This document shows, in pieces, positions 1 through 57,162 of a stretch of DNA of 64,000 nucleotides. The position numbers were made by a program, and so were the translations under genes. Below the pieces are notes generated by a model that did no database searches, was not told where the DNA came from, and worked only from the letters and a program-made list of their open reading frames with translations. The stretch comes from Bugula neritina (lineage: Eukaryota; Animalia; Bryozoa). The stretch is from the NCBI GenBank assembly GCA_964035545.1, contig OZ037769.1, forward strand, positions 4,135,929 to 4,199,928, in the 5' to 3' direction. Position 1 is the stretch's first letter. Every line of letters begins with the position of its first letter.

Positions 1-2160
1 AAAATTATTTTCACTTTTCTTTGACAGCTGATAAGGAAGTGCATACGTAGCATTGTTTGACTTTGATATATGATGCCACACAAATCTAATGCATAAGGCT
101 TGACTAAATCAAAATATGTAAAACTATGCGACTAATGCCAATGTTTGTTTTGTGCTAAAAACCGATTAATTTAAAGCATTTGTTGGCAATATAGCTGCTA
201 AGCTGCAAAAATTAGTAGTAGAAAAAGCTATGCTGTTAAAATAAAAGCTGTTTCCATTAATAATTAGTAAATATGTAGAATGCCTATTATAGATTTAAAG
301 GACTTACATAAATAACAGCTATACATGTGTATTAGATTATGTATGACACATGTTCTAAATAACAATATGTATTTAGCTTACATTTGGTGCACTTTGGAAG
401 TGTGACTACTAAAAACAACATTAGGATTTATAGATTTGTATGAATAAAGCATGGGGCAAGGATATTGAGTTGTAGCATATAGACTTAGAGTTTTAACTAT
501 GACAATAAATTAATTTATAATATAACTGAAAAGTTGAAATTTTCATCTGCAGTTATACTGATGTACTTAAATTTCAAAACTTATTTTCTCTCTAAGTGAT
601 TATTTACACTGCATGAAAGTGGTATTTAACGATTGCTATAACCTAGATATACAAAAAAATTAGTGGTATTTCTAAATAGATGGTGTACCGTAGGTTCAAA
701 TTTTACGTCTTGTTGAAGTTCTTTCTTAGAAAGTTATAAAATTGACCTGTGCTTGCCTTTAATAAAAACTGTTGATTGCTATCTTTGAAAGAAAAAAAAA
801 TGCAAAAGACAGTTTATGAAATAAGTTGAATATTAGTATAGTTTAGTGAAATATTGTCTGTTTGAGCTTCAAATCAAAGAGTGATAATATTAGAGCAAGA
901 GAAAAACCTACTTAAAAAGATCACAGTTTTGCCTTTTATCATAGAGCTTAAATAAGTTTGAAATTTGAATTAACACTTGAAATTCAACCAGTTTTATTTG
1001 GCACAAAATTACGTTATGCCATAAATATAGTTCCCATTTCTCAAAAATATTACTATCATAAATCACTTCACACCATAAAGGTTTTTGCTATCAAAGCCAT
1101 GTCTAGCTAATGTATATATAATGGCTAAAAATAGTTTATCTTTATTTGATAGAAATGGAAGTCTAGTGCTTTCAAATGTCTGGTTAGGGTAATAAAGACC
1201 TTGAAGCTTAAACAGGAAGCAGAAATATCTATTTATAGCCTATTTAATTTTTAGGTTGCTTTATACATTTATTACGTACATAAATATAAAATATTATAAC
1301 TTCTGTTTATTCACCCTTTAATCAACCTAGAAAATTGGTAATAAAAATGCTGCAAAAAATTAGTCATTTAATAAAATTCCTTATACTATACTCAAAAAAA
1401 CTTATATTATATATATAGAAGCATTCAAGTGTTAAGAAAGTTATTGTAAATAATAATATTAGTATTGCCTTTAATAAGCTACATTAATGCTACATTAACA
1501 AATAAATGCAGTTTTAAGTATTCATATCAATCTATTTGTTCATGTGCCTCAGGAATGTTCCCTCAACTATACTAATTTGATTTGTGGGATATTCGTGCAT
1601 ACCATACGGCTAATGAGTCAGCAGAAACTTTGCTGTTGAATTAATATGCACCACGTTTGATACATCAAATAGAAATGTGGAAGGCTATTAATCACGATGG
1701 AAGCATAACCTCAGCTATTTATAAATTTTTTATTATAGCAATGCCACCTAAGAATATATCTAGTAATGCTATTGGCTAATACACTTTACTAGATATTAAA
1801 TATAAGCACTGTAGCTTCGACCTCGCTACCATTTTAAGTATAGAAGTGTTAAATATAGCTCAATAAAACCATAGTCTACTTGAAAATGTGTAAGTTATTA
1901 TTTTAATTTATGAAAAGCATCTTCTGACTTTTGACCAGCATTCAGTAAAATATATGATCTCTGAAAGGTCAATAATTGAACTATATAGCTACAATATTTA
2001 TTCTCAAGTATATATGAATACTTTGGTCTTTAATTTAACTATAATAATAGGTTTTACTGAGTCAAGTTTAGCTTATTTTGAAAACTATTTTAAGATAAGA
2101 ATAATATATACAATTGACTTTTTAATGTTTGGTATCTATAATTATAGCCAATATATAACC
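1..2160. repeat. Inverted segmental duplication, partner about 16850-19200
   Basis: For example, 1741-1920 is a near-identical reverse complement of 17093-17275. Confidence 0.9.
1771..1808 (+). promoter_or_regulatory. Core promoter of paralog 1 (inverted CCAAT + TATA-like)
   Basis: ATTGGCTAATAC at 1771 and AATATAAG about 29 bp downstream; same arrangement upstream of all paralogs. Confidence 0.55.
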
Positions 2161-4815
2161 GCCCATTAGCATATTTCTTTTGTGTGAACACATGCAGAAA
2201 GCAACAACTATGCTATAGTAGCACTGTCGGTTAAAACATTTGTTGATAATAAGCTTTTCATATAGTTTTTTGACTATCAACTATTATAGATGTATATAGT
2301 GACATGAATATATTTTAAATTTCTTATCACTTCTAACCACAATTCCTTTAATCATCTTTGCTCTACTTCACACAAGACTTCAGATATTAATTTCTTTCCC
2401 TTTATTTCTAGTGTCCGAGAAAAGCATCATATGTATATGGGTGCTGGCTACTACACTATTAATTGGTAAGTTTGTAAATAGTGACTTCAAAATAATATGC
2501 ATGATAAATATTATAATGCTTTACCTCCCAACCATCAACTGTCCTAACACCATACCATCTATAGCAATTGTGAAATAAGTAAAGATCAAAGTATGAAATA
2601 CAAGCATGCACTCATCTTCAATAAAGGGGCAATTGATAGTTGAAATGGCTTCTGATCTTATTTTATTTTTAGAAATTTTGGTAAAACTCTTTGAAAGTAA
2701 TAACATGTTGATGTGTTTTAGCATCATTATATTAAATTGACTTAATAAAATAAATTTTTAGTCACGGTTTAAGAGGTCATTATACGAATAGTCTTACAAG
2801 AAGAATATATTAACGCATTTACTGATTATTCTATACATCAGATAGGATGACGGATATACACTGGAATTCATCATTGTATTTTAGGGGCTCACTGTACTCT
2901 CCAGTACAACAGTCATAGCTACAACCCACGATCATACGTACACCAGCCAGGTAAACTCTGCAAAATTACTTCGAAAATAAAACAGAAATGTTAATTTTTT
3001 AAGTTACTATTTTGGTTATGTCAAGTAAAATTTTATCAAAACTTTTTTTTATTGCAAAAAAATCTGAATTTATAAAATTTTAACATTTTGAAAATAAAAG
3101 AATAAACACATTTATGATTTACATGTATATATTGAACCAGATCAACATTAAATATGAATAAAGGTTTTTTTGAAAAATAAACAAGAAAAGTAAAACTTTA
3201 TTATTCAAGTTTTTATTTTTATAGTTACATTAATATTTTAGTTTGCGAAGAAGAGTTTACCAAAGTTTTCTGCAGGTATAAGCAGCTGGTTAATCAGAGG
3301 ACACATGCTAGCTGCTTGAGGTGAGTGAAATCATCTCTGTTATTGTATTCTAAAAGGTTCATTAATAAATCTTCTTCATTCTTAAATAATAAAGTGAAAT
3401 AAATAATTAAATTCAACAAATTTTGTTAACAGCTAGTCAGAATAACTAATCTAAAGTGTTCTAGTGTGGTTAATATATGCTAAGATTCTTGCAAGAAATA
3501 GAACTTAAAAGCTTTTAATTTTTAGTTATTTATGCTAAAGCAAATGAAGTATGTTAAATTAATAAAGTATTTAGCATGTAACATTGCAAATATAATAATA
3601 ATATAATAGGAAAAATTTCTATTGACGTTGTAGTGCTAGAGACTTAGTAGCTGATACAGTAGCCAACTGTGTAGTGAAAGACCCTGTCAAGAGAGTGTCT
3701 CAAGGAATTCAAGTTGTTTCACTGTTTAAAAGAAACTGCGAAAGATTCTACATTGACTTTCCAGCAGAAGGTATGATTATCTATATATTATAGTATCTAT
3801 ATTAAAATATTTATATAAAGAGTTTCATCAATTGCCTTTGCTATGTGCACACACACACACACACACGCACGCACACAAACGCACACAAACGCACACAAAC
3901 GCACACAAACGCGCACAAACGCGCACACACATACCCTTATTTGCAATAAGTCAGCTGAATGTTACAAAAATGAAACATTTAAGCAAATTTATTAAAGCAA
4001 GATGTTTATAATTATTTAAAATTACAACTGACATTATGTTACGTAATCTTTTACAAAGACTGCATTGCTCAAAAGAATCCCACACTATATCTATATGTAA
4101 AAAAAGCTTGGTGATTTTCATTAAATAATTCAACTATACATAGAGTATATAGTTTGGAACTTTTTTTAATCCTTCCATGGTGTATCAAATCTTTATTATA
4201 TAAGCTTATTCCTGACTTTCAGGTTGCGGAAGAATGCTACCATGCTTACAAACTCTATTTGAGAGTGACGGTAAAACTGTCAACTGGTAAGTTATCACAA
4301 CTCCTAATCACACTAGCTCTCACTAAAGTTGTCAATCTGCCAACTTTTTGCTTTCTAAGTCCTTAGAGCACGATGCAAAAGAAAACTGATAAGAAAATTA
4401 ACAGTAAACAAATTTAGATTAACTAACTCTAATTGAATTGATTTTATAGTTCACTCATAACTTGTATCAACTAAAGCTTTGTATGATCAAATTAATGTAG
4501 TTTCTAAAATGTTATAGAGCTAGAGGTTATTACGATTGCAATCATGAGTAAATAATTTATTATAACAAATGCTGTTATATGTCATAATATGTATATTAAT
4601 ATATTTTGTCGTAAAGATAATATCGATAAGTTAGAAACAGTTCATGCGTGTGATATATTGTGTTTAACAGCAGTAAGAGAGATGAAGTCAACAGGTGTTA
4701 TGAAAATGGAAAGAGATGCAACGTAATCAGCAAGATACAGGATTTAGTTATCAATAGATTTGTACCCCAGATTTGCCCAACTGTAAGACCAGCTTTACCT
4801 ACCAACTGCTACTAA
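1886..4815 (+). CDS. Secreted 12-Cys protein, paralog 1 (182 aa, 7 coding exons)
   Basis: Exons 1886-1889, 2412-2465, 2885-2950, 3242-3320, 3634-3770, 4223-4286, 4671-4815, all GT-AG, 549 nt. Spliced: [182 protein letters not shown]. Exon phases and core exon sizes are conserved in six other copies. AATAAA at 5126. Confidence 0.9.
3847..3932. repeat. (CA)n / (GCACACAAAC)n microsatellite
   Basis: Direct reading; intron 5 of paralog 1. Confidence 0.95.
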
Positions 4816-6469: not shown

Positions 6470-6682
<213 letters not shown>

Positions 6683-6684
6683 AA

Positions 6685-7216: not shown

Positions 7217-7306
<90 letters not shown>

Positions 7307-13732: not shown

Positions 13733-16700
13733 TTAGTAGCAGTTGGTTGGTAAAGACGGTCTCACAACTGGGCAAACCTGAGGTATAAATCTATTGATAA
13801 CTAAATTCTGTACATTGCTAGCTAAGCCACAGCCTTCTTTTTTTGCATCTTCATAACATTGGTTGACTTCATCTCTCTTACTACTGTTAAATACAATATA
13901 ATGCAAATGTAAACCATTTATAAATTACTGATGCTATCATAGTATCAAGTTACAATTATGATCCAACAGAATTTATTATAAATTTTTTTTGTAAATTGTA
14001 AACACAGTCAAATTTATAGAATTTTTAACAGAGTAGTTTCTATATCAATTATATACAAGTAATACCTAATTTATAAAATTTGTAATAAACTAGATGGTTA
14101 TTGCTTGTAGTTCTGTTACCCTATAAGCTAAAATGACTGAAGCAGACTATATAACTTACCAGTTGACAGTTTTACCATCACTTTCAAACAATGTTTGTAC
14201 ACATCTTGCAAGTCTTCCACAACCTGAATATAAAGAAATTCACAGTTATTTGACACATCTTGAAAAAAGTAAAGTACTTTCTGTTGAGAGAATTGAGAGA
14301 ATTCTTAGAGTTTTTTTAAATACCAAAACTATACTAGCATAAAAAAATTGATTAACTAAATGTAAAACAAAGCTGCTGGTTATAATAATATATAGAGAAA
14401 GCTGAATTATTATTTAAAATTAATGTTGGAAAGCCATTTTTCATTAGCTATGTCTATATACGATATTTTAATTTACTTGTTTACCAATCTATGTTTAATT
14501 TTTTTCTATTATTTTAGCTGTGATACGTAATAATAATGTGAAATAAAATGTTCATCTGATTTGAAAATGCAGTTAGGGGCTCAAAAAACTAAAAAAATAT
14601 ATATTTATTGACTATAATATTATAGTAATCAACACTTCGAAAATATTGCAATAAAATAAACATATTGCCTTTTTTGTGTATACCAAGAGATTATAGCATA
14701 TAAAATATTTATACCGTCTGCTGGAAAATCAATGTTAAAGTTTCCACAGTTTCTTTGAAATAACAAAACAACTTGAATTCCCTGAGACACTCTCTTGACA
14801 GGGTCTTTCACTACACAGTTGGTTATTGCATCAGCTACCAATGCTCGGGCACTGCAACATTAATAGAAATTGATATATAGTGATTGTCAAAAGCGTATTA
14901 TACATATTATACTGTCAACATAATGTAGAAATACTAATTTGCATATAAATATGTTTTAAAGTAAATGTTATCATTGTCCAAACATCAATTAAAATACTAA
15001 AATAATTTCAACAAGTTTTATCAGCTACAACATAAAACTTCAACTATACAGATATTATGTTTTTGTTCTGTTATGAAAGTGTATATATATATATTATGTA
15101 GAAAATTCAATATCTATGCTAACCAAATTAGCAATGCTGTGGTTATATAGTTACATCCAAGTTTAATAATAGTTGTCATATTAAATGCTTAGTTTCTAAT
15201 TTTAAATATTATTGCAATATATATATTCATGATAACTTTATAAAGTGATAGTGAGTTTTTGTTTTATCTGCTCTTATTTTCACTTGTAGAAAGATTTCAA
15301 CTTGCTAAAGATTATATATATTAACACATGACCTAACATCATTGGCATAGTTGCATTATATAATGGTTCAGACGAGTTCACCTCAAGCAGCTGAAGTTAT
15401 GCTGACCGTTAACGAAAAATGTTGAACTGAATTTTTAATTTTCTCTTTCTCTAAAATTTATTTAAAATGAAGTATATTTATGATAATACTTTCAAAATGA
15501 TAACAGAAACTATTTCACTCACCTCAAGCAGCTAGCACGCGTCTTTTGATTAACCAGCTGCTTATACTTGCAGAAAGTTCTTGCCAAATTATCTTCACAA
15601 ACTAAAGTATACATTAAATTTGGTTAATGATAAAATGAAATAAGAAAACTTCACTTGTTCAAAATTGTTACAAGAAAATGTTGAACAATTTAGTTTAAAC
15701 CCTAAATAAAAGCATATTAACACTCTTTCTCAACAACTAAAGCTAAGACATTTTACTTTTCCAACTAAATAATTATATTGTATTATTGTATCATTATAAT
15801 TATTTTTAATTATAATTATATTATATAAGATGAATATTTTATTTTACTCTTGATTAATTTGTTCTATTTTATCATATATGGCTAATATCTTGCAGAAGTT
15901 TATATTATACCTGGTGGTCCGTGATTGTAGTTATAATTATTCTGGTAACCACTGGAACAGTGAGCTCCTGAAGTAAAATACAAAGTTTTGATATAAGCTG
16001 TAACTATATTCTTTTTAAAAGTCAACTATGAAACAGGTTTTTAGTACAACAACATATACAATAGGCCTATTATTAAAATCCGGAATCAGCATAATCTAGT
16101 CAAAATCCAACAAAATAATGTATAAAAAGCTGTTGATTAAATTTTTGTGCATGAGATCTTGCAAAAACTATTCCAATTTCCACTTACATTAATTGATTTA
16201 TTATCACATTTTTTGTATTTCAACTGCTAAAACAGATGCAAGTTGTACTGCTGCTTTTAATGTAGATAACATGCAGCACTCTATATTATGAGTACATATT
16301 ATAGAAAGCTATAATGAAGTTTTTAACTTGAAGAACTCACCTATGAATAGTGCAGCAGCACACACCCAGATGGTTAATAAACTTTTTCCAGACACTAAAA
16401 ATAAAGAAATATTTATAATTTACATTTCCTTACATAAAACATATCAAAAATAGTTTTAAAATATAAATGCTAATATTATTGTATTGGATTGTGCAACCAG
16501 TTACATATATAGTCAAAATATGCACGCTTACAAAATTAAAAAAATTATAAAATCTTTCGTAATTCATTGTTATAGCTATTTTATGCTTTATACAAACTAT
16601 TAGAATAAAGGTATCTCTAAAACCACTTTATGTTATATGCAGCTATAGATGTTTATAATAATCATAAAGAAAGATTGTGCTTTTATTAAACATAGTTTTT

Positions 16701-17126
16701 GTCTCTTATTATATAAAACTAGCATTGCAGACTTATATATACAAAAGTTAGTTTAAAGAAATGATTTTTAAATGGATTAATTATATAGCAGTTAATTAAA
16801 ATACAAAATAAAGTTGGTTGCAGTAATTGCAGTTATATTTTGGCTATAATTATAGATACCAATTAAATAAAACCAGCAATTGGGTATTTTGATTTTAAAC
16901 CCTCGGTATATGCTATTATTTTATAAATTTAAAATATTTTTAAAATAAGCTAAACTTGACTCAGTAAAACCTATTAGGCCTATAGTTAAAATAAATTTAT
17001 ATACTTGAGAAAAAATGTTGTTATTATAACTAGTTCAATTTTTGACCTTTCAAAGATTGTATTTTACTAAATATTTGTCAAAAATCAGAAGATACTTTTC
17101 ATAAATTAAAATAATAACTTACACAT
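13733..17126 (-). CDS. Secreted 12-Cys protein, paralog 2 (181 aa)
   Basis: Exons (minus) 17126-17123, 16394-16341, 15967-15911, 15601-15523, 14851-14715, 14223-14160, 13883-13733. MLSGKSLLTIWVCAAALFIGAHCSSGYQNNYNYNHGPPVCEDNLARTFCKYKQLVNQKTRASCLSARALVADAITNCVVKDPVKRVSQGIQVVLLFQRNCGNFNIDFPADGCGRLARCVQTLFESDGKTVNCSKRDEVNQCYEDAKKEGCGLASNVQNLVINRFIPQVCPVVRPSLPTNCY*. ORF 14629..14841 contains most of exon 5. Confidence 0.9.
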
Positions 17127-17203: not shown

Positions 17204-17241
17204 TGCTTATATTTAATATCTAGTAAAGTGTATTAGCCAAT
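17204..17241 (-). promoter_or_regulatory. Core promoter of paralog 2
   Basis: Near-identical inverted copy of the paralog 1 promoter (CCAAT at 17237-17241). Confidence 0.55.
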
Positions 17242-23779: not shown

Positions 23780-25410
23780 TTAGTAGCAGTTGGTAGGTAA
23801 AGCTGGTGTTACAGCTGGACAAATCTGAGATGCAAATCTCTGGGCAACTAAATTCTCTATATTACTGGTTAAACTACAGCCATCTTTCCTTGCATTTTCA
23901 TAGCACTGGTTGACTACATCTCTCTTGCTGCTGTTAAACACAATATCACACATATGAACTGTTCCTAACTTATTAATATGATCAATGACAAACATTGACA
24001 AATATTGTAACATTAAATTAATATAAACTAATTACTCATGATTGAAATGGTAGTAATTTCATGCTCGATCTATAGCATTTTATAGAATACAATTTGAGCA
24101 TACAAGGCTTTAGTTGATTCAAATAAACTATAATGAACTGATCAAATCAAGTAGAGTTAGTCATTAAAAGTTTGATTAAAATTATAATTTTCTTATATAA
24201 GTTTTATTTTGCCTCAGGCTCTAAAGACCTGGAAATAATAACCTTGGCAGAATGACAATTTTACTTTTGTGTGATTTATAGGACTTGTGATAACTTACCA
24301 GTTGACAGTTTTACCGTCACTCTCAAATAGAGTTGATACACATTGTGCCAGTCTTCCACAACCTGAAAATTAGAAAAAAGCTTGCAAATATTCCATGTAT
24401 CATGTATGGGGGGGGGGGGATTAGGGCAAATTCTTATAATTGAATTAATTACTGCAGATCACCAGGTTCTTCTACATATAATTACAGTTTTGGTAAACGA
24501 TTAAGTAACATGGTTTATTGGAAACTGTATTTCTTGATAAATTTTAAAAGATTCAATTACAAATATACGTTCACATTGTTTCAAAAAGTTTGCCTAAATA
24601 TTTTATTTCTTAATAATTCCTCTATGTATAGCAAAGAAATGCGCGGGTGCAGACGTGTATGTAAGTTTGTGTCTGTGTTTGTGTTTGTGCTTGTGCGTGT
24701 GTTTGCAGTATAAACTAGTTCACCAAGTTATACTGGCTTCACAAGTAGTAAAGGCCATTGGTGATATTATAAACTTATAATATAAATCATTTAATTGAGA
24801 TAGTTTACATATAGATGTTCATACCATCTGTAGGAAAGTCAATGTAAAGGTTTCCGCAGTTTCTTTGAAATAACAAAACAACTTGAATTCCCAGCGACAC
24901 TCTCTTGACAGGGTCTTTCACAACACAGTTGGTTATTGCATCAGCTACTATTGACCGAGCACTACAATATTAAAAAAAAATTTGTCAATTATATTATTGT
25001 TATATATACGCATTGACAATTTTGTATGCTAAATGCGTTAGTAATTTAACATACTTTGTCTGCTTTAGCATAAATAGCTAAAAATATGAAGCTTTTAACT
25101 AGTTTGTGGAAAACTCTTAGCATATCAACCACACTAAAAACTTTGTGATTTGGTATGCTGAGTGTTAACAAAAGTTGCTAGATTAAATTATTAATTTCTT
25201 TTATCTATAATATAAAAACAAAGTATATATATGTATATACATATGTATACTTTGTTTTTGATAAACCCATAAAATACTAACAGAGATTATTTCACATACC
25301 TCAAGCAGCTAGCACGTGTCCTCTGATTAACCAACTGCTTAAATCTGCAGAAACCTCTTGCCAAATCATCTTCACAGACTAAAATTAAAAAAATAAAGCT
25401 TTACTTTTCT

Positions 25411-25481
<71 letters not shown>

Positions 25482-26804
25482 ATTTTTTTAAATTTAACAC
25501 AATTATATTCCTTTTGATAAAAACAAAAAATTGTAAAAAAGTTTCTACTTACCATAATCATAACAATAACTTGAAAACACTAACGCCTTTGTTTGATTTT
25601 TACAGTCAAAATGCAGAACTTACCTGGCTGGTATGATCGTTGGTTGTAGCTATGACCGTTGCCATGGCCGGGCGTGCAGTGAGCCCCTACAATAAAATAG
25701 TGGATCTCAGTGTATCTGTCATTCTATCTAATGTATATAACATTTATTTAATGTATTTGTCTATTTTTCTTGTAACACTATTCATATAATGACTTCTAAA
25801 ACTATAATTGCCCAATTTTTTTTTCATTCATGTTATTATATTATACTAAAACACAAAACTCATTTTTAAACAAGGTTTTTAAGATGATTCAAGATTAATA
25901 ACTCCTTCAACTATCAGTTTCACTTTTGTCAATAATGAGTATGCTTGTATTTCATACTTTAATCTTTATTTAAGATAAGTTGGGTGGTTTTAGGACAGAG
26001 GTTGTGAGGCAAAGTACTATAATATTCCTCTGCATACTATTCCTTAAGCTGCTAATTTAGCAACTTACCAATGAATAGTGCAGTAGCCAGCACCCAGATG
26101 GATAGAATACTTTTTCCGGACACTGAAATAGACAAAAAGACGTTATTTTTAAACTGTTATATATAATAGTGCGAAAGAAACTGAGAGTATGTGGTTAGAA
26201 ATGACAAAAAAATATATATGTGTGTCACTACAATTATATAATAGTTATTAGCCATTAAAATTTCTAAAAAAAATATTATCGTTAAGTACCTTAACTAAAA
26301 ATGTGACTACAATAGTTGCTACTTTTTGTATTCACACAAAAGAATTCTAATCCTAAGCTTTTTTTTAAAACTAAGTTTGGTATTTTATTAAAATTATTAC
26401 AAAATTTATGGTATTTAACTTTACAATTATTATATAAATAGCAAGCCTCAAAAAAAATATTGTAAAATAAAAAATATTGTTATTCAATTTATGACTTAAT
26501 TTTAAAACCAAAATAATACCTTTTGAATTCAAGAATAAGATTATTACATCATGATTCTCTTTTTGCAATAAACTAATATAGTTTGACGTTAGAAGCAGTT
26601 AAACCAACTTCTATATTGATACAATTATTGCATTTATTGATGAGTTTGATCTCAAAGATTCAGTGAATAAGCTTCAGCAATAGATTGACAAAAAAAAATA
26701 TGATGACAAAAGAAAATGATGTATTTACTTTTCTTGAAAATTTATCAATTGGTTTTTAAAATACAATACTAAGAAAATCAACTGGCAGCTCTATATTTAC
26801 GCAT
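23780..26804 (-). CDS. Secreted 12-Cys protein, paralog 3 (183 aa)
   Basis: Exons (minus) 26804-26801, 26122-26069, 25686-25624, 25378-25300, 24961-24825, 24362-24299, 23930-23780. MLSGKSILSIWVLATALFIGAHCTPGHGNGHSYNQRSYQPVCEDDLARGFCRFKQLVNQRTRASCLSARSIVADAITNCVVKDPVKRVSLGIQVVLLFQRNCGNLYIDFPTDGCGRLAQCVSTLFESDGKTVNCSKRDVVNQCYENARKDGCSLTSNIENLVAQRFASQICPAVTPALPTNCY*. Confidence 0.9.
25214..25259. repeat. 46-bp near-perfect palindrome
   Basis: aaaaacaaagtatatatatgtat / atacatatgtatactttgttttt, one mismatch. Confidence 0.9.
25413..25482. repeat. (TA)n microsatellite
   Basis: Direct reading. Confidence 0.95.
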
Positions 26805-26883: not shown

Positions 26884-26919
26884 TTTATATACGAAATCGA
26901 CCAAAATTTGTTAACCAAT
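26884..26919 (-). promoter_or_regulatory. Core promoter of paralog 3 (ATTGG...TATATAAAC)
   Basis: CCAAT 26915-26919; TATATAAA on minus strand at 26884-26891. Confidence 0.6.
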
Positions 26920-28976: not shown

Positions 28977-29848
28977 TTAGTAGCAGGTGGTAGGTAAAGT
29001 TGGTCTTACAGCTGGGCAAACCAGAGGTACAAATCTATTGATAACTAAATTCTGTAAGTTGCTGATTAGGTTGCATCGGTATCTCTTTCCATCTTCAAAA
29101 CACCTGTTTACTTCATCTCTCTTACTGCTGTTAAACACAATATATCACATACTTGTAAACTGTTTCTAACTTATTAATATTATCCTTGCAGCAAATATTA
29201 ACAATTATTGTGACATATAACAGCATTTAACATAAATTAATTACTCATGATTGCAATAATAATCACTTCAAGCTCTATACAATTTTAGAAACTATATAGT
29301 TTGATCATATTACAAAGCTTTAGTTGATACAAGTTATAATGAGCAGAGTGTAAAATTACCTCAATTAAAGTTAGTTATTCTAAATTTGTTAACAGTTAAT
29401 TTTCTTATCAGTTTTATTTTGCATCAGGAAAAGTTGGCAGATTGACAGCCTTAGTGAGAGCTAGTGTGATTAGGAGTTGTAATAACTTACCAGTTGACAG
29501 TTTTACCGTCACTCTCAAATAGAGTTTGTACGCATGGTAGCATTCTCCCGCAACCTGAAAGTCAGTAATAAGCTTATATAACAAATATTTGATACACCAT
29601 GAAGGGATTAAAGAACGTTCCAGTATAATATAGTTGAACTATTTAATGAAAATCACCAAGCTTTGTTACATAGATAATATAACATATGATTCTTTTGAGA
29701 AATGTAGTTCTAATAAAAAATTATAGGTAACATACTGTCAGCTGTAATTTTAAATAAATTTGAACATTTTGTTTTAATAAATTTTAAAAAAAAATGTTTC
29801 ATTTTTGTAATATTTAGTTGACCTATTGCAAATAAGTGTGTGTGTGGT

Positions 29849-29880
<32 letters not shown>

Positions 29881-29937
29881 CTGTGTGTGTGGTGTGTCTG
29901 TGTGTGTGTGTGTGTGTGGTGTGTGTGTGTGCGTGTG

Positions 29938-29989
<52 letters not shown>

Positions 29990-30693
29990 TGTGTGTGTGT
30001 GCACATAGCAAAGGCAATTGATGAAAATCTTATATAAATTGTTTAATATATATACTATAATATATAGATAATCATACCTTCTGCTGGAAAGTCAATGTAG
30101 AATCTTTCACAGTTTCTTTCAAACAGTAAAACAATTTGAATTCCCTGAGACACTCTCTTGACAGGGTCTTTTACAATACAGTTGGTTACTGTATCAGCTA
30201 TTAAGTCTCTAGCACTACATCAATAAAAAAATTTCCGGTTATATTATTGTTATATCTTTGCAATATTATATGTTAAATACTTCAATAATTTATCATACTT
30301 CATTAGCATTAGCATAATCAACTAAAAGTATAAAGCTTTCAACTATTTATGCAAGAATCTTTTAGTTCATTAACCACACTAGAACACTTTAGATTAGGCA
30401 TGCTGAGTGTTAACAGAAGTTGCTGAATTAAATTATTTATTTCACTTTCTTATACAAAAACGAAGTATATTTATGATAAACCTTTTAGAATATGATAACA
30501 GAGATGATTTCACTCACCTCAAACAGCTAGCATATGTCCTCTGATTAACCAGCTGCTTATACCTGCAGAAAGTTTTTGCAAACTCCTCTTCGCAAACTAA
30601 AATATAAATAACACTCAAAAATTTGAATGACAAGCTAAACTTTTCGTGTTTATTTTTTGAAAACAATCTTATTCATCTTTAATGCTGATCTGG

Positions 30694-30768
<75 letters not shown>

Positions 30769-32191
30769 ACATCTTTTTTATTTAAAAAAACTATATATAT
30801 ATATATATATATATAGTTTTTTTAAATAAAAAAGATGTAACAAAATTTCCACTTGGCATAACCATAACAGTAACAATTTAAAGAACTGACATTTCTGTTT
30901 TATCTTTACAAGTAATTTGCAGAGCTTACCTGGCTGATGTGAGTATGGTTGTGGGTTGCTATGGCTTGGAGTACAGTGGACCCCTGAAATAAAATAGTAG
31001 AGCTCAGTTTATCAATCATTCAACTATATATCAGATGTATAGAATACTCATTCAATGCATTCTCCTATTCATATAATAATCTCTTAAACTGTGACTGACA
31101 AATTTATTCTGTTAAATCAATTTAATATAATTATATTAAAACAAATAAATACATTTTCTCAAGTTCAGGGATTGTGCCTGAAATAGTTAAAATGATTCAA
31201 AATAAAAAAGTCATTTCAACTATCAATTGCCCCTTTATTGAAAATGAGTGCTTGTATTTCATAGCGTAATCTTTATTTAACCTAAGCTGCATGGATGGTT
31301 CTAAAGCCGATATCGGTTGTGAAGCAATGTACTACAGTATATATAAATATTCATACCCGTATTATTATTGAAGTTACTATTTAAAGACTTACCAATAAAA
31401 AGTGCAGTAGCCAGCACACAGATAGACATAATGTTTTTTCTGGACACTAAAATAGACAGAAAATGAAATTTCAAACCTTTAGTAAAGTCGAGCAAAAAAA
31501 CTAAGAGATGTGCATTGTTTGATGTGATAAGGCATTTAAAATAAATGCTTTTCGATCACTACATCTATAAACAAAATCAATAAACTTTATAGAAAATTTA
31601 TTATTATAATAAGTACTTTAGCCAAAACTGTATATAACTGTATAAAACTCTATATAAGCTTTGCTGATTTTCTGTATTAGCGCATAAAAGAAATATATAT
31701 ACTAAATATAGACATGTTTTGTAAAAATAAATTTGGCACTTTATAAAATTATTACAAAGTAAAGCATAACTAATTTTATATTCATATAATGTACAATTAA
31801 ATCAGCTACATAATATTAAATTATCTATCAATAAGCCTCTAAAAATATTGTAAAATAACAAATATATTGTCATTCAAATTATGACTGAATATGTTGAAAG
31901 ATAGTTTTGAAACCTAAGTAATACCTTTTACACTCAAGTATAATATCATTATAACATCATAAATACCTTTCTAAAACAAACAAAATTTGACTGTGTACGC
32001 TAAAAATAGACAAGCCAACTCCTATATTTCAATTATAGCAATTTTTCACAAGTTTGATCTCAAAACTTTCATTAGCACTCACATTTATTTTTGTCAATTT
32101 ATTGTTGAGATACATCTATAGTAAATGAAATATCATAGTTCTTCTGAAATTGAATTCTGAAAATAACTAGTAATAGGATCTACTTACACAT
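28977..32191 (-). CDS. Secreted 12-Cys protein, paralog 4 (180 aa)
   Basis: Exons (minus) 32191-32188, 31446-31393, 30983-30930, 30596-30518, 30214-30078, 29554-29491, 29127-28977. [180 protein letters not shown]. Confidence 0.9.
29835..30001. repeat. (TG)n/(TGCG)n microsatellite
   Basis: Direct reading; intron 5 of paralog 4, homologous position to 3847-3932. Confidence 0.95.
30765..30842. repeat. Perfect 78-bp palindrome
   Basis: 27-bp arm tgttacatcttttttatttaaaaaaac + (TA)12 + exact reverse complement. Confidence 0.95.
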
Positions 32192-32268: not shown

Positions 32269-32304
32269 TTTATATACAAAATCTACCAGCTTTTATTGAC
32301 CAAT
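32269..32304 (-). promoter_or_regulatory. Core promoter of paralog 4 (ATTGGTCAATA...TATATAAAC)
   Basis: CCAAT 32300-32304; TATA 32269-32276. Confidence 0.6.
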
Positions 32305-35059: not shown

Positions 35060-37996
<2,937 letters not shown>

Positions 37997-38072: not shown

Positions 38073-38111
38073 TTTATATACCAAATCTACGACTGTTATA
38101 TATTGACCAAT
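38073..38111 (-). promoter_or_regulatory. Core promoter of paralog 5 (ATTGGTCAATA...TATATAAAC)
   Basis: CCAAT 38107-38111; TATA 38073-38080. Confidence 0.6.
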
Positions 38112-38920: not shown

Positions 38921-38921
38921 A

Positions 38922-40288
38922 TGCTCTCAATTGCTCTCAATTCCCGGTAAAGTTTTTGCCCGTGTCCTTCTAAATAGACTGACATCATATGCAGAAAACT
39001 TCCTACCCGAAACTCAGTGTGGATTCCGTAGTGGAAGAGGAACAGCAGACATGATATTTGCACTGAAGCAGATACAGGAAAAATGCATCGAGCAAAATAT
39101 GCCCCTGTACATGGTCTTCATTGACTTCACCAAAGCGTTCGATACTGTTGATTGGGCGACCCTGTGGAAGATCTTACAGAAACTCGGTTTTCCCAGTCAC
39201 TTCACCAATCTTATCAGCGCTCTCCATACTGGCATGAAGGCCTCAGTGAAGCTGAAGGAGGAGTTATCTGAGTCGTTCCAGGTCAACAATGGTGTGAAAC
39301 AAGGATGTGTGTTGGCTCCAACGCTATTCTCTATTTTCTTATCGGCTGTTCTACAGCACGCATTTGAAAACTGTGATAAAGGCGTCTGGATTCAAAGTAG
39401 ACCTGGAGCTGATCTGTTCAATGTGAACCAATACAAGTCAACAACAAGAACACAGAAAGTATTGGTTAGAGAACTCATGTTTGCTGACGACACTGCCTTC
39501 GTTGCACACAGCCATGGCGATGCACAGGAATTAGTCGACAGATTCGCCAGAGCTTCCAAAGCTTTTGGTCTGAAGATCAATATCAAGAAAACGGAAACGC
39601 TCTACCAACCGGCACCTGGAGCCCATGACAGTGGTGACAGTATTTGCATAGATAATGAAGACCTTGCCAACGTCAATAAGTTCAAATATCTTGGGTCTAC
39701 AGTGATGTGCAACAACAAGATGGATGAAGAGATTCATACAAGGATGTCCAATGCTTCAATCTCATTCGGCAGACTAAAGACCAAAGTGTGGTACAATAAG
39801 GATCTGTCATTCAAGACCAAGTGTACAGTGTACAGAGCCATTGTCCTGTCCTCTCTGCTCTATGGAGCGGAGGCCTGGCCTGTATACAGGATAGCCGCTC
39901 ACAAATTCAACACCTATATGATGAGACATCTACGCCAGATCTTGAACGTGAAGTGGTGGGATTTCATCTCGAATGAGGAGACTCTAGCACAGGCAAATCT
40001 ACCCAGCATGTATGAACTACTCATTCAAAAAAACCTGAAATGGGCTGGTCATGTGCATCGAATGGATAACTCTAGATTACCTAAACAAATTCTCTATTCA
40101 CAACTGAAAGAAGGCACCCGTGGTGTTGGCAGGCCGCGACTGAGATTCAAAGATACCGTTAAACGCAATCTAAAAGACATGAAGATCCCTATTGGTAGCT
40201 GGCAATCTCTCAGCAAAGACAGATGTAAATGGAGGACCATGATTCACCGGAAGTCATCTTCGGACACGAAGGACAGCTAATGATGATA
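38922..40288 (+). mobile_element. 5'-truncated RTE-clade non-LTR retrotransposon (LINE)
   Basis: Visibly GC-richer than flanks; RT ORF starts mid-domain; stop codon followed directly by a short TGATGAT tail; sits at the edge of a (TA)n tract; possible degenerate TSD TATATAA(AA)TGCT. Confidence 0.9.
38931..40280 (+). CDS. Reverse transcriptase + C-terminal domain of RTE LINE (N-terminally truncated, no endonuclease)
   Basis: Uninterrupted 449-aa ORF with motifs [59 protein letters not shown]. Confidence 0.92.
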
Positions 40289-40591: not shown

Positions 40592-40595
40592 CCAA

Positions 40596-46473: not shown

Positions 46474-46510
46474 ATTGGTCAATACACTATTGCTATTGAT
46501 TGTATATAAA
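46474..46510 (+). promoter_or_regulatory. Core promoter of paralog 6 (ATTGGTCAATAC...TATATAAAC)
   Basis: ATTGG 46474-46478; TATATAAA 46503-46510. Confidence 0.6.
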
Positions 46511-46564: not shown

Positions 46565-49358
46565 ATGTGTAAGTACAGTTTGGTGATTGCATAGGTACTT
46601 TATCATATTAATTTCTTAACAATTTCACATTTTTATTTTTTTTATTAGTAAGACCTCTAGCATATATATTCATACATATATTTACTATAGACACAAAAGT
46701 AAACTTGCATGAATGCGCATTGCCACACACCTGCATACACTTTTGTAACACACGCACACACACACACACGCACGCACGCACTCACACACACACAAACTCA
46801 CATACTCACACTCACACACTCACACATAAACTCACACATAAACTCACACATAAACTCACACACAAATTGTCGCCAATTTTATTCAAGGATTGTGAAACAT
46901 AGAGTTCTTTTGTCTATTTTTAGTATCTGGTAAAATCTGGTTGTGCGTTGCCCTTCTATTCATAGGTAAGCAAAGATCGTTATCACGTTTATCAACATTA
47001 TGTAAACAGATGCATCCATGCATGCAACAGCATGTATCTGGTCAAATAATGTATTTCCACACGTAAATATGCATCTTATGATAATATGAAAATAAAATTG
47101 TATGGTATAAAACTTAATAATATATATGTATAATTCAATTTTATTCTATATTATACTGCTTGCATTATATCATGTACCTAAGGCTATCAGAGTTAGGTGG
47201 CATATGCTATATATATTTAGGTGCTGTTTGAGAGGCTGTATTGATTTAGGTAAACAACCAGTAGACATGTATCTGTATGTATAAATATCAATACTATATT
47301 TATATGCATAGTCAATTAAAAAGAATTGACATCCTGTATATATTTTTGTCAAAAAGTTATATATATATACACTGTTAATAATCCCTTTTGTAAATTTTAA
47401 ATAAAAGAAACATGTTATGTTGTTAGCCTGTATAAAATTAATTTATATCATTCTACTTTACTATACGCAGTTAAACTGTGTTCTATTATTTTGCTTTAGG
47501 AGCAAACTGTTCACGTGGATATCATCCTAGAAATAGACCATTCAACCGCCGACCACATACGTATTATAAGCCAGGTAATATATTATAACTTATATCAACT
47601 TTTGAAAAAGGAATAAATAACAATATGTTTTTAGTTATAAATTTCTGACAAAATATATTTACTTAGCCTTTCATGGGGTTTTTGTTTTATTAAAAATAAA
47701 TGTTTCAGCTTAAAAATACAAAACATAGCAACACAATTTTGTTTTGACTATAGTCATTGTTTTGTAAACCCAAATAAACTATATATCACATAATTAACAA
47801 TTGATTCTTTAATTTTGTTTAGAACTTAAAATATATAACTTTTTATTATTCTAACATATAATTTATTGAATTGTATTTTATATTATAGTATGTGAGGATA
47901 ATTTGGTAGATATTTTCTGCCAATACAAGCAACTGGTAAATTACAAAACATATGACAGCTGTTTAAGGTATGTTTGCATAAGTTCGAGGGTACGAATTGC
48001 ATAGTAGAAAAATTGCAAGTTATAATCAATAGTTAATTAAAGCAATAACTATTAGTTTACTATTGAGCAACGTATTTCATATATTTGTTATAAAAAACTA
48101 ATGTTCTTATAATGTGATAATTTCACATAACATTTTATTATTTTATTATATATGCAACAACCAAGAGATTTGAAGTTTGCTCTAAAATCTTTTTCAAAAT
48201 CGATTTTATCATTATATATTACCACAACTAGTGTGTGTGGGTCTCGTTTAACTACTTTTAACTAGAATGCTAACGCTTGTGGTTAAAACATTAAATTAAT
48301 TAAATTTATATACAAGTACAATTTTATTGGCTGTTAGGACTATACTAGCACTTACAATGTTTATTTTATTATCAACAGTTGCATTCGTTAGAGCATATTT
48401 TTCAGAGCTCGGGATTTGTTTGCTGAATCAACAACCAACTGCAAGATCAAGGACTCAGTTCAGAGGGTGATTCGGGGAGTTGACTTTGTGTTCCAATTTG
48501 CTCGGAATTGCGCCCGTTTTCAGATTGACTTTCCAGGAGATGGTAAAAAATTCTTAGATTGATCAGCAGTTATAAACCCTCAGTGTAATATAGTATAAAT
48601 TATTTGTCCTATAAAATCAGCCTAGTGTAAAAATAACTTAACTATATAGAGATAGTATGTTATTGCAAAAGGATAAAGATGTGTACTATTATAATTATCT
48701 CAATAGAAATTTTTGCTTTTTATAATCTACTAAATATTCTTATTTTCTAGGCTGTCCCACACTCTCAGATTGTGTTGCAATTCTAATTGAAAGTGACGGC
48801 ACAACAGTCAACTGGTAGGCTATTGTGCATTTTATTTCTAGCGAAATACAACTAAGAAAGATACTTGCTGCTATAAAATTCTTTTCATTAGTATTATTAC
48901 TACGCAAGGACCAAAAATGGACTTGGAAAAATTAATTTTGAAAAGAAGATGCGATTGCAAACTGTAAACACAAACACATTGATTGAAGGGTTAACATTTT
49001 TAATTCAAGCTTATAAAAATTATTTATTGATATAGCACAGCATCAACTTAATATGTATTAAGATAACATTACAAATTAAACAGAAGTTATTTTGAATACT
49101 ATTGCTATATTATGCGATATATATTGATTGTAATTTGTCATTGCATGATAATAATATTCAGTTAGAGACAATCTATATGTCTATGTATATATTGTATGTA
49201 ACAGTAGCAAGAAAGAAGCAGCCAATCAGTGCTACGAAGACATAAGGAAAACAGGTACATGTGATTTCCTTGGTCCAATACAGGACTTGATTATTGGACA
49301 GTTTCTACCTATGGTGTGTCCAGTTATACAACCAGAATTACCTGCTAGCTGCTACTAA
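46565..49358 (+). CDS. Secreted 12-Cys protein, paralog 6 (184 aa, divergent subfamily B)
   Basis: Exons 46565-46568, 46924-46965, 47500-47574, 47889-47967, 48406-48542, 48751-48814, 49205-49358. MLSGKIWLCVALLFIGANCSRGYHPRNRPFNRRPHTYYKPVCEDNLVDIFCQYKQLVNYKTYDSCLRARDLFAESTTNCKIKDSVQRVIRGVDFVFQFARNCARFQIDFPGDGCPTLSDCVAILIESDGTTVNCSKKEAANQCYEDIRKTGTCDFLGPIQDLIIGQFLPMVCPVIQPELPASCY*. Confidence 0.9.
46748..46865. repeat. (CA)n / (ACACATAAACTC)n repeat
   Basis: Direct reading; intron 1 of paralog 6. Confidence 0.9.
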
Positions 49359-51770: not shown

Positions 51771-53803
51771 TATTTTTTAGTCTACAACATTCTATTTGCA
51801 ATAATAGTTCAAGTGTTGAAATTTTTAAGCATAAATTGTTAAAGAGGTGCGTGTTTATTGTCTTGGGCATTTTCTTGCTTGCACGTGCTAACATCAAGGT
51901 TCTCATTTGGTGTCTTGAGAATATAGTAAGAAATATACTATTTTCACATAAATTCTATTAGCAAATCTAGTAAAAAACTAGGTTAATATAGTAAGTATAG
52001 TTAATATATAGATTAAGTTAGTAAATCTAGATATTAATTAAGTTAGTAGGCTAATTATGGCTATAATATAAATACAGTCAGTAAATCTGGCTATAAATTA
52101 GGCTGATCGCGTTACAGTAATAAATCTTGCAGAATTATCTCAATGGATTTGGTTTAAGCATGCATTAGTAAAGCTCCCTATTATTAATCTTAAGAAAGAT
52201 ATACAATAATAAACTGAATTCTTATAAGTTGAAAAAAGCATGGCGTGTAACTCCGCTACAATAGCTTTTAAAGCAGATTGTAAATTATCTTGTATAACCA
52301 AATGGTTATTCAGATGAAAACTCCAAAAAAGCAACAGTATTAACAATATTGCTGCCAGAACTTCGACTATAATATAGAATGCAGCCTATATTTGTAAGAC
52401 TGGGGACTAAACACTTTGAATATACACATATATAGCTATACATGCTCTCTACCAATGTTGGTTAAAAATCAATTGAAACTACTTGAATGAGATTTCACTA
52501 GCTTTGAAGTTGCATTCACTATATTATCTACTCACTGTTATGTTATTATGATTATAATTATAGGCGTATAACTGTTACACAAGATATAATAAAAAGATAA
52601 TTTATTAGGTTACTTATGCCTTTAAAAAAATATAAAAAGGCAAAAGCAAATAAACTACAAAATTTTATACTAAGCTAAAATTTTTGCTACTAAATGACAG
52701 CTAGTAGAGCAAGCTAAAAATCAAATCAATTACTTAATTACTTAGCACGGCTTAATGTTGCTTAATCTCTCTTGTATGTTTTATGATGAGCTGCATATTC
52801 AAACAAACGATGGGTGTGCAACGCCAACAAGCAGGATTATGCTAGCTGTAAAGCTAATATGCTCTGGAATTTTGCTTTAAGTATTTTGAGTACGCCTGAG
52901 AGATTTGCTAGAATTTTCAAAATATACCCGGGCGTGGTACTAGAGGTTACAGTGCTTTTAAGTAGAATTATATGTATCTATTGCATAATGCATAGATATC
53001 TTGTTCGTTATGGATCCAAATGTCTAGCATAGCATGCTTTATATATAAACTAGTATATTCAATATATTTACACGCTAACTGGATTAAGGATAACTGCCCT
53101 CTACATACATGTATTATTATGTATATAGTATCGATAAATAATTTTAGGAAATTTTGTTAATAATTAATACTCTACTATAAATATGCGATATATTTATATG
53201 AATATAATTTCCATTAACTTTTTGCGTGAAAACTGAGCAAATTAAACATGTGGTATGAAATGTATTGAAGAGCACAACCATGCAGCTTTATACGTTGTAG
53301 AAATTTTTGAGTCAAGCCAAAAAAGCTTCAATTTTTTATTCTAAGCAGTCAAAAAAATGTGCAGTTTTCTGACTTTAAGCTTAACCTTGAAGTCAAAGAT
53401 TAATACTACGATTGTGCTTTGAGCTATTTATTATATTATTATCATTATTATATTGCATATATGATACATTTATGTAAGTATTTTTATGTTTTAAAAAATC
53501 AGTTTTCTCTTAACTTTAAAACTTGTATAATTCAAAAGCATGGGTTTTAGCTTTTGCATTTTTAGTTTTAGGAATTTATGTATTTTTTACCTATAAGAAT
53601 ATGTCACCCAAGAACAGCAAAAAATGATCTGATTAGGGAGGAAAAAATCTCATGAACTATGCACCACATTTGATAAATTGCCAACATTAAAATAATCTTA
53701 GAAAGCTTATCATCAAAAGAGAGATTAACCCAAGTCTTTAAAATATTGGGAATATGAGATCAAATAAAAAATGTTCTTGAGCCGGTATGTAAAATAAGAC
53801 TTC

Positions 53804-53840
53804 ATTGGTCAATACAGAGTTTCGAATAATTTTATATAAA
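53804..53840 (+). promoter_or_regulatory. Core promoter of paralog 7 (ATTGGTCAATAC...TATATAAAC)
   Basis: ATTGG 53804-53808; TATATAAA 53833-53840. Confidence 0.6.
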
Positions 53841-53919
53841 CTGGAAAGTTTTGAACTGGGTGTCAGATTAAATATACAAGCACTACTTGGCACCATATCA
53901 TTATAATCTACACTTCAAT

Positions 53920-56900
53920 ATGTGTAAGTATATATATATAAATCTTTACTACGGGATGTTTTTCAATTCCTAGAAATTTGAAATCTATTTGATAAACTTT
54001 CAGCCAAATTTACTTTGAACATATATCTGTACCCACCTTTATTTAGTGATAACTTAATTATGAGAAGATACTTAAACTGAGTAAAATTGATTGTAAGTCA
54101 TTATATATAAATACTGATAGTCAATACAGTACTGACCTATTAATTTAGCTATAGAAATTAAAATATTATAGTAATTGCTCTGTAATTGTGCTTTAACACA
54201 ATTACTAACAAAGTTTTTTGCTTACAGAGACTATATATGTATAGTCTGTACCAAAACATATTTGGAAAATGTCAAGCAAGCTTTTGCTAATGCATAATAA
54301 AAAATGTAGTCGTCCACTACAAACAAAAAAATGTATATAATCTTTGTAATTTAGCTGAGCAAAAACTTTACTTGATGCGTTTCATAAATTTTGATTTCTT
54401 AGCTGTTTTAAGCACACAATGTATTTTCAGAATTAGATAGTAGTTATATGCGATTTTCTTTTTTCAGCTTTTGGAAAACTAACGAAGATTTTTCTGGTGT
54501 GCACTGCTTTGCTACTCGTAGGTACGTAGCGAAAAAGTTAGCTATCTAAAAATGTATAATGTGCCTTTGCCTACTTTAAGACAGTTGTACTGCCTGCCTG
54601 TATCTGTTTTACCAAAACTTTGAGATGACAATCAGTAGATAGAAACAGCAACTTTATACCCACGTAAATTTCAGCACAAAAAAAGTTATCAAATTTATTA
54701 TTCATGCATTCAGTTCAAGGGTGCAATTTTTGTGTACGGATGCTTCATTAAAACAATCATTAACTGTCAGTTACAACTATAGTGCATGCATATATATTAA
54801 TATAATGTGGATTTGGTTATAGTCTTTATAAAGTATTGATTTTGTTGTACTAAAACTGAGCACGTAAATTATCTAAACATTTTATAGATAAACAGTCTTT
54901 CAACTTTTACATTTTATTTTTATTTTAGAAGCACATGGTTTGCATTTCCTTGACAGGTATAACTACCATCACCCATATTATCGTGAGACAGGTAACGTAA
55001 GTTTAAAGTTCAAAAACAAAAATTAACATTTTTATATTATTGCTTCAACATAGTTGAATCAGGTCAATTGAAAATTTACCTTGATTTAGACTTAGCTCTA
55101 TATATAAAGATTATAAAAAGTGCTAGTAAGCTTGATCTATATTTTACAACATATTTTAAAAATTGGATCAACGAAAAAATCAAGAAATATAATTTTCATT
55201 AAAAATAAAGATAGAAATAAAGTTTAATTATCTATAATTTAGGGGTGGGTAACTGGAGGCCCCAGGGCTACCTGTGGTCCCTTGCCAATTTTTCAGTAAC
55301 TCCTAATAATGCTTAAAATAGGTAAATTATGTTGCATAAATTCTGATTATAGCACAGTATAGGCTTGGTAACAAATTACTTTATTATATAATGAAATGTA
55401 ATAATATGTGTTATATATACAATCATGTGGCCCTTTCTTTTGGCTGACTTTTGAACTTGGTCCTCATGCAAAACAATATAGCCAGTATTTTCTTTTAATT
55501 CAAATTTGTATTTTAGTTTGTGAAGACAACTTGATAGACATTTCCTGCAAGTTCACTTGGCTAGTAGAATACAGAACATATGGCAGTTGCTTGAAGTATG
55601 TTAGTTCAACCCTATAAATACAAGGAACATATTTTTATTATATAATCCTAAAGCTTAATGTCATTAGAATAACCACACGTAGACTTATTACTGTATTAAT
55701 GATTAGGATTACATCAAGATTATTATATACACATATTCACCAGAAGATTTTTCTATTATAGCAATTCTAATACCAAGCGATGGCCAGAACTTAAATCGAT
55801 GTTTCTATCACGTACATCAGGTTATTAACAATCACTGCATTTACTTAGGCAAAATTTATGGGGCCTAACACTCTTTGTGCATATGGCTAAGTCAAGTTGG
55901 CATCTACATAAAGATATGTAGTGCAATGTAAAAATCACATACGTGGCATCTCCCAATATGCACTTAGGGCTTTAAATTTTAAAAAAGTTCTTATATATAG
56001 CAACAACGGTATTATGTGTATAAATAATAAACCAAAACTATCGATATAATTGTTTATGTTAGCTTATTATTATTGTACTTAAATGCATTGGTTATAATGC
56101 ATTAGTAATGCATTTATCAACGTCATTATAAATAGATTTGTTAATTTGATTCTGCTGCTATAACTGACGTTATTGTAAAAAATGTGTCTGTATTTTAGAG
56201 CTCGAAAACTATTTGCTGCTGCTACAACCAACTGTAAGGTGAAGGACTCTATTCAGAGAGTTATTCGGGGAGTTGACTTTGTGTTTAAGTTTGCCACAAA
56301 CTGTGCCCGATTTAGGATTGACTTTCCTGCACCTGGTATAAATATTTTATGTCAATATCTAGAGATAAATTTACATGACATTGTAATGTAATGTCTTATA
56401 TTTTGAATAAACAAGCAATTAACTTTATTTATAATATAATTGATGAAATGATCTTGTGCTATTTTTAGATAATAATTATGTTAGGTACCCTTTCACAATT
56501 TGTTGTTTTAGGTTGTCCAAGTCTCTCGGATTGTGTAAAACTTTTAGTTGAGAGTGATGGAAAAACTGTTAATTGGTAAGTAAATTTTATGTTTTATTCA
56601 AGCATGTAAGATAATGGCAAAACTATGTAATATTTCTAAATGACAATTATTATATTGAGTGCAAAAATTCTAAATAAAAAGCATATTATAGTGAGGAAAT
56701 GCTGTTTCGGAAAAGGTAACTCATATAAATTATCAAAACTTCAATCGATTTTTAGTTTAACATGAGTTCAATTACCAGTCTATTAAAACTTTACTAGCTA
56801 GAAATATTGCATAATTATACACTATTGCCTTTTAACATATATTAAAATGAAATTGCTATATAAATGTGGTGTTTTCATTTAAGGATATCAAACTTTGGTA

Positions 56901-57162
56901 TTGCACTTCAATGTCATGTGATCATGCATTGTTGAAGATTGACTATGTTTGACATCAATAATTATAATAAACAATATACAATAATATTATGTAATATTTT
57001 ATTAACAGCAGCAAGAAAGATGCAGCCAATCAGTGCTATGAAGATATTTTGCAAAGAGAAAACTGTGATTTTACTGGTCCAATACAAGATTTGATTATTG
57101 GACAGTTTCTACCTATGGTGTGCCCAGTTATACAACCAGATTTGCCCAAGTGCTATAACTAA
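53920..57162 (+). CDS. Secreted 12-Cys protein, paralog 7 (184 aa, divergent subfamily B)
   Basis: Exons 53920-53923, 54468-54521, 54929-54991, 55517-55595, 56199-56335, 56512-56575, 57009-57162. MSFGKLTKIFLVCTALLLVEAHGLHFLDRYNYHHPYYRETVCEDNLIDISCKFTWLVEYRTYGSCLKARKLFAAATTNCKVKDSIQRVIRGVDFVFKFATNCARFRIDFPAPGCPSLSDCVKLLVESDGKTVNCSKKDAANQCYEDILQRENCDFTGPIQDLIIGQFLPMVCPVIQPDLPKCYN*. Confidence 0.9.
55240..55475. mobile_element. Possible degenerate hAT-like MITE remnant in intron 3 of paralog 7
   Basis: Begins taggggtgggtaactggaggccc, with repeated tgtgg(t/c)cc subterminal motifs typical of hAT non-autonomous elements; right TIR not seen. Confidence 0.35.

Follow-up and report, generated by a model that had tools for sequence, protein, structure and literature searches.

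DUF19 (PF01579) is, according to its Pfam description, a domain of about 130 to 157 residues with 12 conserved cysteines. In Caenorhabditis elegans it occurs in 51 or more genes whose products are 140 to 220 residues long, 42 of them with a signal peptide and 14 induced by infection (PMC3534327), and these genes lie in tandem clusters, respond to stress and gave no observed phenotype upon knockdown by RNA interference (RNAi) (PMC8410859). A 19-kDa protein of the oyster has also been named DUF19 (PMC10058639). Here, we analyzed 64,000 nucleotides (nt) of the bryozoan Bugula neritina (C5:4135929-4199928 of assembly tzBugNeri2.1; the window hereafter), in which seven genes between window positions 1886 and 57162 encode putatively secreted proteins with 12 invariant cysteines. 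Most likely, they represent a lophotrochozoan branch, and a very divergent one, of the secreted 12-cysteine domain referred to as DUF19 or T20D4.11-like, which is related to CPG4.

The bryozoan family resembles DUF19 in its predicted signal peptide, single domain, size of 140 to 220 residues, tandem clustering and large membership. Both have 12 cysteines in a domain of similar length, a comparison of number and length rather than of spacing, with the DUF19 side taken from its Pfam description. In contrast to nematode DUF19, the genes described here belong to a bryozoan, have seven exons with a first exon of ATG plus one base, and encode a linker rich in histidine and tyrosine. Proteins of the chondroitin proteoglycan 4 (CPG4, PF15481) and DUF1397 (PF07165) families are secreted and extracellular, as the bryozoan proteins probably are, but they are generally longer, and no hidden Markov model (HMM) match connects the bryozoan proteins to either family.

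Conservation and extent of the tandem array

The seven gene models were rebuilt from their coordinates, and the spliced sequences were translated, aligned, scored for the ratio of nonsynonymous to synonymous divergence (dN/dS), placed in a tree and compared by BLAST with fetched proteins in local scripts. All seven genes are complete, with GT-AG boundaries at every intron, coding exons of 4, 54 (42 in copy 6), 54 to 75, 79, 137, 64 and 145 to 154 nt (the last counted with the stop codon) and intron phases identical in 7/7 copies. Neither a stop codon nor a frameshift interrupts the open frames, which encode 178 to 184 residues, and exon 1 of each gene consists of ATG and one further coding base only. 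The initial annotation of this DNA had proposed the same span, exon lengths and phases, and these turned out to be exact. A tblastn search of the window with the copy 1 protein recovered the other six copies, the lowest expectation value (E) being 1e-27, and gave no further noteworthy match.

Comparison among the copies demonstrated selection on the coding sequence, with dN/dS values of 0.13 to 0.57 in 21/21 pairs, including those with saturated dS, in agreement with the purifying selection suggested at the outset. Coding identity exceeded intron identity throughout. Exons of the older pairs were 73 to 82% identical and their introns about 47 to 61% (73% versus 47 to 57% for copies 6 and 7, and 82% versus 49 to 61% for copies 2 and 3), in line with the intron divergence that the initial annotation had remarked on. 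Moreover, the AUGUSTUS models in GenBank use the same exon joins as the window models, including the first exon of ATG plus one base; the GenBank gene models of B. neritina were made with AUGUSTUS and transcriptome hints (PMC7576161). From their sequences, the seven genes appear to be functional paralogues with predicted splice junctions. It is extremely improbable that these are duplicates that lack expression or are decaying, or that the models are artefacts of prediction. No transcript evidence was obtained, but open frames, splice sites, phases, the 12 cysteines and a promoter pair are kept in all seven copies, dN/dS does not reach 1 even where dS is saturated, and a second assembly has intact orthologues.

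The seven copies are part of a larger family. When the genome (216,009,554 bases in 321 sequences) was searched with an exon-5 profile, 19 exon matches were found, every one of them in the interval from 4.097 to 4.343 Mb of C5. The array comprises at least 19 tandem genes over approximately 250 kb of this scaffold, and the window copies are one clade within it. The 12 extra loci share the layout of exons 4 to 7, and the frames are open at 11 loci, the 12th (3 kb) being too short to judge. In the tree, the seven window copies and three GenBank orthologues formed one clade (support 99/98) apart from the other subfamilies. The seven intact copies described initially are thus real, but the cluster is not self-contained.

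Every database relative found was a B. neritina protein. The three orthologues, EB796_018474 (87.5% identical to copy 1), EB796_018473 (93.7% to copy 3) and EB796_018472 (95.6% to copy 7), are annotated as hypothetical proteins (KAF6023217-9), and about 15 further EB796 models are also related; as proteins of another assembly and population, the EB796 entries are orthologues or paralogues of the window genes. The EB796_018473 model is without its N-terminus, and that of EB796_018472 has a wrong one. In this independent GenBank assembly, contig VXIV02002744.1 (record 1-52091) contains at least six copies with exons 4 to 7 or 4 to 5 open, in an order and orientation that differ from those in the window. 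Among the gene listings retrieved, genes are called at three, possibly four, of these at least six copies, and the possible fourth would cover a partial copy where the retrieved stretch ends. The same listings have no called gene for at least two copies, namely the counterpart of copy 6 and a copy-5-like gene. Given these copies without a called gene, the initial description of the cluster as hidden is partly true for the GenBank annotation, although three orthologues had already been annotated. Over exons 4 to 7, copies 6 and 7 have counterparts with 96 to 100% identity to the window genes (that of copy 6 is identical in exons 5 to 7), whereas the copy 1-, 4- and 5-like genes reach only about 87 to 92%. 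The sequences suggest that the youngest subgroup may be subject to copy-number or structural polymorphism, or to gene conversion, between B. neritina assemblies.

Protein architecture and predicted fold

The spacing of the core cysteines is 8-13-13-22-11-5-13-8-(6/8/9)-18-(10/9) in 7/7 copies, and the 12 invariant cysteines fall within 139 to 142 residues in all seven, likewise across the subfamilies. Both the framework written in the initial annotation and the motifs that it had quoted as invariant (VCE, NC, RV..G, IDFP..GC and E.DG.TVNCSK) were verified in the copies. Heuristic scoring indicated a signal-peptide-like N-terminus in these proteins of 178 to 184 residues, with lysine at position 5, an 11-residue hydrophobic stretch (mean Kyte-Doolittle value, 2.35 to 3.14) and then I-G-A/V-H, corresponding to a hydrophobic h-region and a small-residue c-region; secretion, as initially predicted, is therefore probable by this scoring. 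Between the signal peptide and the core lies a variable linker of 16 to 20 residues in which His, Tyr, Asn, Pro and Arg are abundant. The core is approximately 140 residues long, and the mature protein would be approximately 18 kDa with an isoelectric point of 7.6 to 8.9 and one conserved N-C-S sequon. A 13th cysteine adjoins the likely cleavage site in 6/7 copies and is found neither in copy 7 nor in other subfamilies.

The window copies were searched externally exon by exon, and full-length searches and folding used public orthologues (P0013, P0001, P0005, P0019 and others). The AlphaFold2 model of P0013:40-184, the copy 1 orthologue, has six helices (predicted local distance difference test score [pLDDT], 89.2; predicted template modeling score [pTM], 0.81), and the same six helices were obtained for P0019:28-185 (pLDDT, 92.3; pTM, 0.85), which is 42% identical to the P0013 segment. 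The core is thus predicted to consist of six helices held by the 12 invariant cysteines. Since the cysteines are even in number and invariant, we infer six disulfides. The helical, six-disulfide protein proposed in the initial annotation is consistent with the all-helical core of both models and with the plausibility of six disulfides.

Some of these features raise the question of a structural role, in which the proteins would be components of the cuticle (ectocyst), a larval adhesive or another extracellular matrix, and the His/Tyr-rich linker together with the odd 13th cysteine would provide the cross-links. All copies share the enrichment of the linker in His, Tyr, Asn and Pro, the 13th cysteine lies beside the predicted cleavage site in most of them, and the CPG4 relatives are named for a proteoglycan core protein; judging by titles, papers that mention DUF1397 deal with the peritrophic-matrix proteomes of insects and with the venoms of centipedes. 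However, the linker measures just 16 to 20 residues, and the repeats or low-complexity bulk typical of structural proteins are absent. Moreover, the 13th cysteine may leave with the signal peptide and is missing from copy 7 and the other subfamilies, and proteomic support was not found. A matrix role is distinctly unlikely.

The predicted fold also bears on a possible carrier function, in which the six-helix module would bind small lipophilic molecules in the manner of odorant-binding proteins, with symbiont-made bryostatins or settlement cues as candidate ligands. A compact, secreted six-helix module of approximately 16 kDa is predicted, and the paralogues are many and diversified. Insect odorant-binding proteins, here an analogy only, are likewise small, secreted six-helix proteins whose helices are held by disulfides and whose genes form expanded tandem families, but they have 6 cysteines rather than 12. 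Neither sequence nor fold searches gave a match to odorant-binding proteins or to a lipid-binding family of any kind, and a carrier role is highly unlikely. The bryozoan family is not a member of the insect odorant-binding proteins (PBP_GOBP), an assignment rejected for the lack of a Pfam hit and of a fold match and for the 12 cysteines in place of 6.

Relationship to DUF19 and candidate function

Kinship to DUF19 was suggested by protein language-model comparison and by a database label. In ESM-Atlas feature searches, which had DUF1397 among the neighbor clusters, the top neighbor of P0005 was a nematode CPG4/DUF19 cluster (score, 0.90; 195 of 256 features shared), and the top neighbors of P0013 were nematode DUF19/CPG4 clusters (score, 0.85; 171 of 256 features shared), although scores of 0.85 to 0.90 arise by chance too in a minority of cases. 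The two queries are approximately 44% identical, and UniProt/UniRef labels P0013 a 'DUF19 domain-containing protein'. The family had initially been called unrecognised, and this stands insofar as no Pfam or PDB match was found, but not in view of the label on one orthologue and the DUF19/CPG4 neighbors. As the Pfam model PF01579 gave no match, the link to DUF19 rests on language-model similarity and the database label, and true homology is about an even proposition, perhaps slightly better.

Overall, we somewhat favor the reading that the genes are functional tandem paralogues of a divergent DUF19-like secreted family that may serve in defence or stress response on the surface of the colony. 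Several points weigh against it. In a Pfam scan at a cut-off of E ≤ 10, neither the exon peptides nor 16 full or partial family proteins matched any model, including PF01579, PF15481 and PF07165. When the PF01579 model (157 positions; cut-off, 23.2 bits) was run against the whole genome, it had no match within the array, and the family is therefore not filed as a DUF19 member. The language-model similarity and the DUF19 label may both be machine-learned and serve as leads only. Furthermore, nematode DUF19 is itself a biochemically uncharacterised family. Finally, no transcript-derived protein was present among the protein collections searched, and a search of sequencing runs yielded one DNA-type entry only.

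The only genomic matches to PF01579 came from a repeated open reading frame (ORF), at a subthreshold 19.7 bits over model positions 121 to 156. This ORF encodes 1062 residues in 6/7 hits (C8:2387126, C3:26198634, C8:3425084, C8:11774087 and C5:13307445, among others); it is probably a mobile element and is unrelated to the array.

Further searches for relatives bear on the alternative that this is an orphan family, with a fold found in bryozoans only and no evolutionary link to DUF19 or CPG4, for which the language-model similarity would reflect generic traits of small, secreted, helical, cysteine-rich proteins. In line with this alternative, no Pfam family was matched by HMM, and the feature scores noted above can occur by chance. 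The exon-5 profile retrieved only Bugula proteins from 1.84 billion representative proteins, and word-indexed protein searches likewise returned only Bugula relatives (P0005, used alone as a query, returned only itself), so that the family was lineage-specific within these searches, as had been supposed. Structural neighbors were also lacking: Foldseek found none in the PDB at E ≤ 1e-3, template modeling (TM) scores in the ESM-Atlas shape search were all below 0.5, and in a wide VIA fold search the best Z was 6.0 for both models, with generic helical repeats as the matches, a value that is low even among helical proteins. A DUF19 structure did not come up in the PDB searches either. On the other hand, DUF19/CPG4 clusters ranked top for two members with only about 44% identity and 171 to 195 shared features, one member is labelled DUF19 by UniProt, and the 12 cysteines, domain length (HMM of 157 positions), size class, signal peptide and tandem clustering are all common to the family and DUF19. 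An orphan origin is possible, though on the unlikely side. A fuller version of it, in which at least 19 fast-diversifying genes encode a new fold of six helices and six disulfides that is restricted to bryozoans, lacks any solved or catalogued relative, is unrelated to DUF19 and serves a bryozoan-specific extracellular task (such as defence of the surface, control of the bryostatin-producing symbiont or of its products, or larval settlement), is rather unlikely.

Two other families were considered and rejected. For secreted phospholipase A2 (PLA2), the only match was bee PLA2 at E = 0.11 over 48 residues, without a Pfam hit, and saposin gave no match of any kind. PDB sequence profiles produced noise only (transferrin, E = 0.2; PLA2, E = 0.11), and no paper that mentions these loci was found in the literature.

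Under the favored DUF19-like reading, a signal peptide would direct each protein into the endoplasmic reticulum, where oxidation would yield a rigid, protease-resistant helical module to be secreted by epithelial cells. The module may then function in defence or stress response through extracellular binding where the colony borders on its environment, while the surfaces of the paralogues would have been diversified through birth-and-death evolution. Such a role would resemble that of the infection- and stress-responsive DUF19 genes of nematodes. The effector, toxin or pheromone roles suggested initially are speculative.

Layout of the locus and significance

Three of the seven genes lie on the forward strand and four on the reverse strand, and each is preceded by a promoter pair consisting of ATTGG (inverted CCAAT) and, 30 to 33 nt downstream, TATAAR, with the TATA box 60 to 85 nt upstream of ATG across the copies. 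In a motif search, this pattern had 8 matches in the window versus 1.2 expected by chance, and 7/8 belonged to the seven genes, each on the strand of its gene. The eighth, at 37180-37215 (+) in a copy 5 intron on the opposite strand to that gene, is probably a chance match.

Copy 1 (1886..4815, +; 182 residues) has exons at 1886-1889, 2412-2465, 2885-2950, 3242-3320, 3634-3770, 4223-4286 and 4671-4815 (4/54/66/79/137/64/145 nt), with GT-AG introns and an open frame; its promoter pair lies at 1771..1806 (+), with a spacing of 30 nt and the TATA box 85 nt before ATG. The next four copies are on the reverse strand, and their exons are given in gene direction. Copy 2 (13733..17126, -; 181 residues) consists of 17126-17123, 16394-16341, 15967-15911, 15601-15523, 14851-14715, 14223-14160 and 13883-13733 (4/54/57/79/137/64/151 nt), with the promoter pair at 17206..17241 (-). 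Copy 3 (23780..26804, -; 183 residues) consists of 26804-26801, 26122-26069, 25686-25624, 25378-25300, 24961-24825, 24362-24299 and 23930-23780 (4/54/63/79/137/64/151 nt), with the pair at 26884..26919 (-); it starts with ATGC where the others have ATGT, and its protein still begins M-L-S. For copy 4 (28977..32191, -; 180 residues), the exons are 32191-32188, 31446-31393, 30983-30930, 30596-30518, 30214-30078, 29554-29491 and 29127-28977 (4/54/54/79/137/64/151 nt), and the pair is at 32269..32304 (-). Those of copy 5 (35060..37996, -; 178 residues) are 37996-37993, 37314-37261, 36870-36817, 36511-36433, 36119-35983, 35649-35586 and 35204-35060 (4/54/54/79/137/64/145 nt), and its pair at 38073..38111 (-) has the 33-nt spacing.

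Copies 6 and 7 return to the forward strand. Copy 6 (46565..49358, +; 184 residues) has exons at 46565-46568, 46924-46965 (the 42-nt exon), 47500-47574, 47889-47967, 48406-48542, 48751-48814 and 49205-49358 (4/42/75/79/137/64/154 nt), with the promoter pair at 46474..46510 (+) and the TATA box 60 nt before ATG. In copy 7 (53920..57162, +; 184 residues), whose C-terminus is C-Y-N, the exons are at 53920-53923, 54468-54521, 54929-54991, 55517-55595, 56199-56335, 56512-56575 and 57009-57162 (4/54/63/79/137/64/154 nt) and the promoter pair is at 53804..53840 (+).

Other features were observed within and between the genes. CA-rich microsatellites of the CACACAAACG type occupy 3847-3925 within intron 5 of copy 1 and 46740-46880 within intron 1 of copy 6. 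An ORF of 449 residues (38931-40280, +) located between copies 5 and 6 has the domain of a reverse transcriptase (RVT_1, E = 2.8e-32); this retrotransposon fragment explains a local increase in GC content. Downstream of copy 7, GC content is higher (0.34 to 0.36) and GC skew strongly negative (-0.25) at 58000-62000, and overlapping ORFs of 203 to 267 residues without a Pfam match occur on both strands at 58916-59726. When the whole 64-kb window was searched with Rfam at gathering thresholds, no RNA family was detected.

B. neritina is known for its bryostatin-producing symbiont, and Bryozoa are among the animal phyla least studied at the molecular level, where this array is among the larger lineage-specific families of secreted proteins. 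The gene models presented here correct an incomplete public annotation. If the link to DUF19 is true, one of the biggest uncharacterised families of secreted nematode proteins would extend to a bryozoan, and two confident structure models for a fold without a PDB neighbor would offer a handle on a domain that has been resistant to RNAi screens. If it is false, the array would instead represent a new disulfide-rich helical fold. Either way, its genes are candidates for functions in surface defence, matrix or symbiosis.

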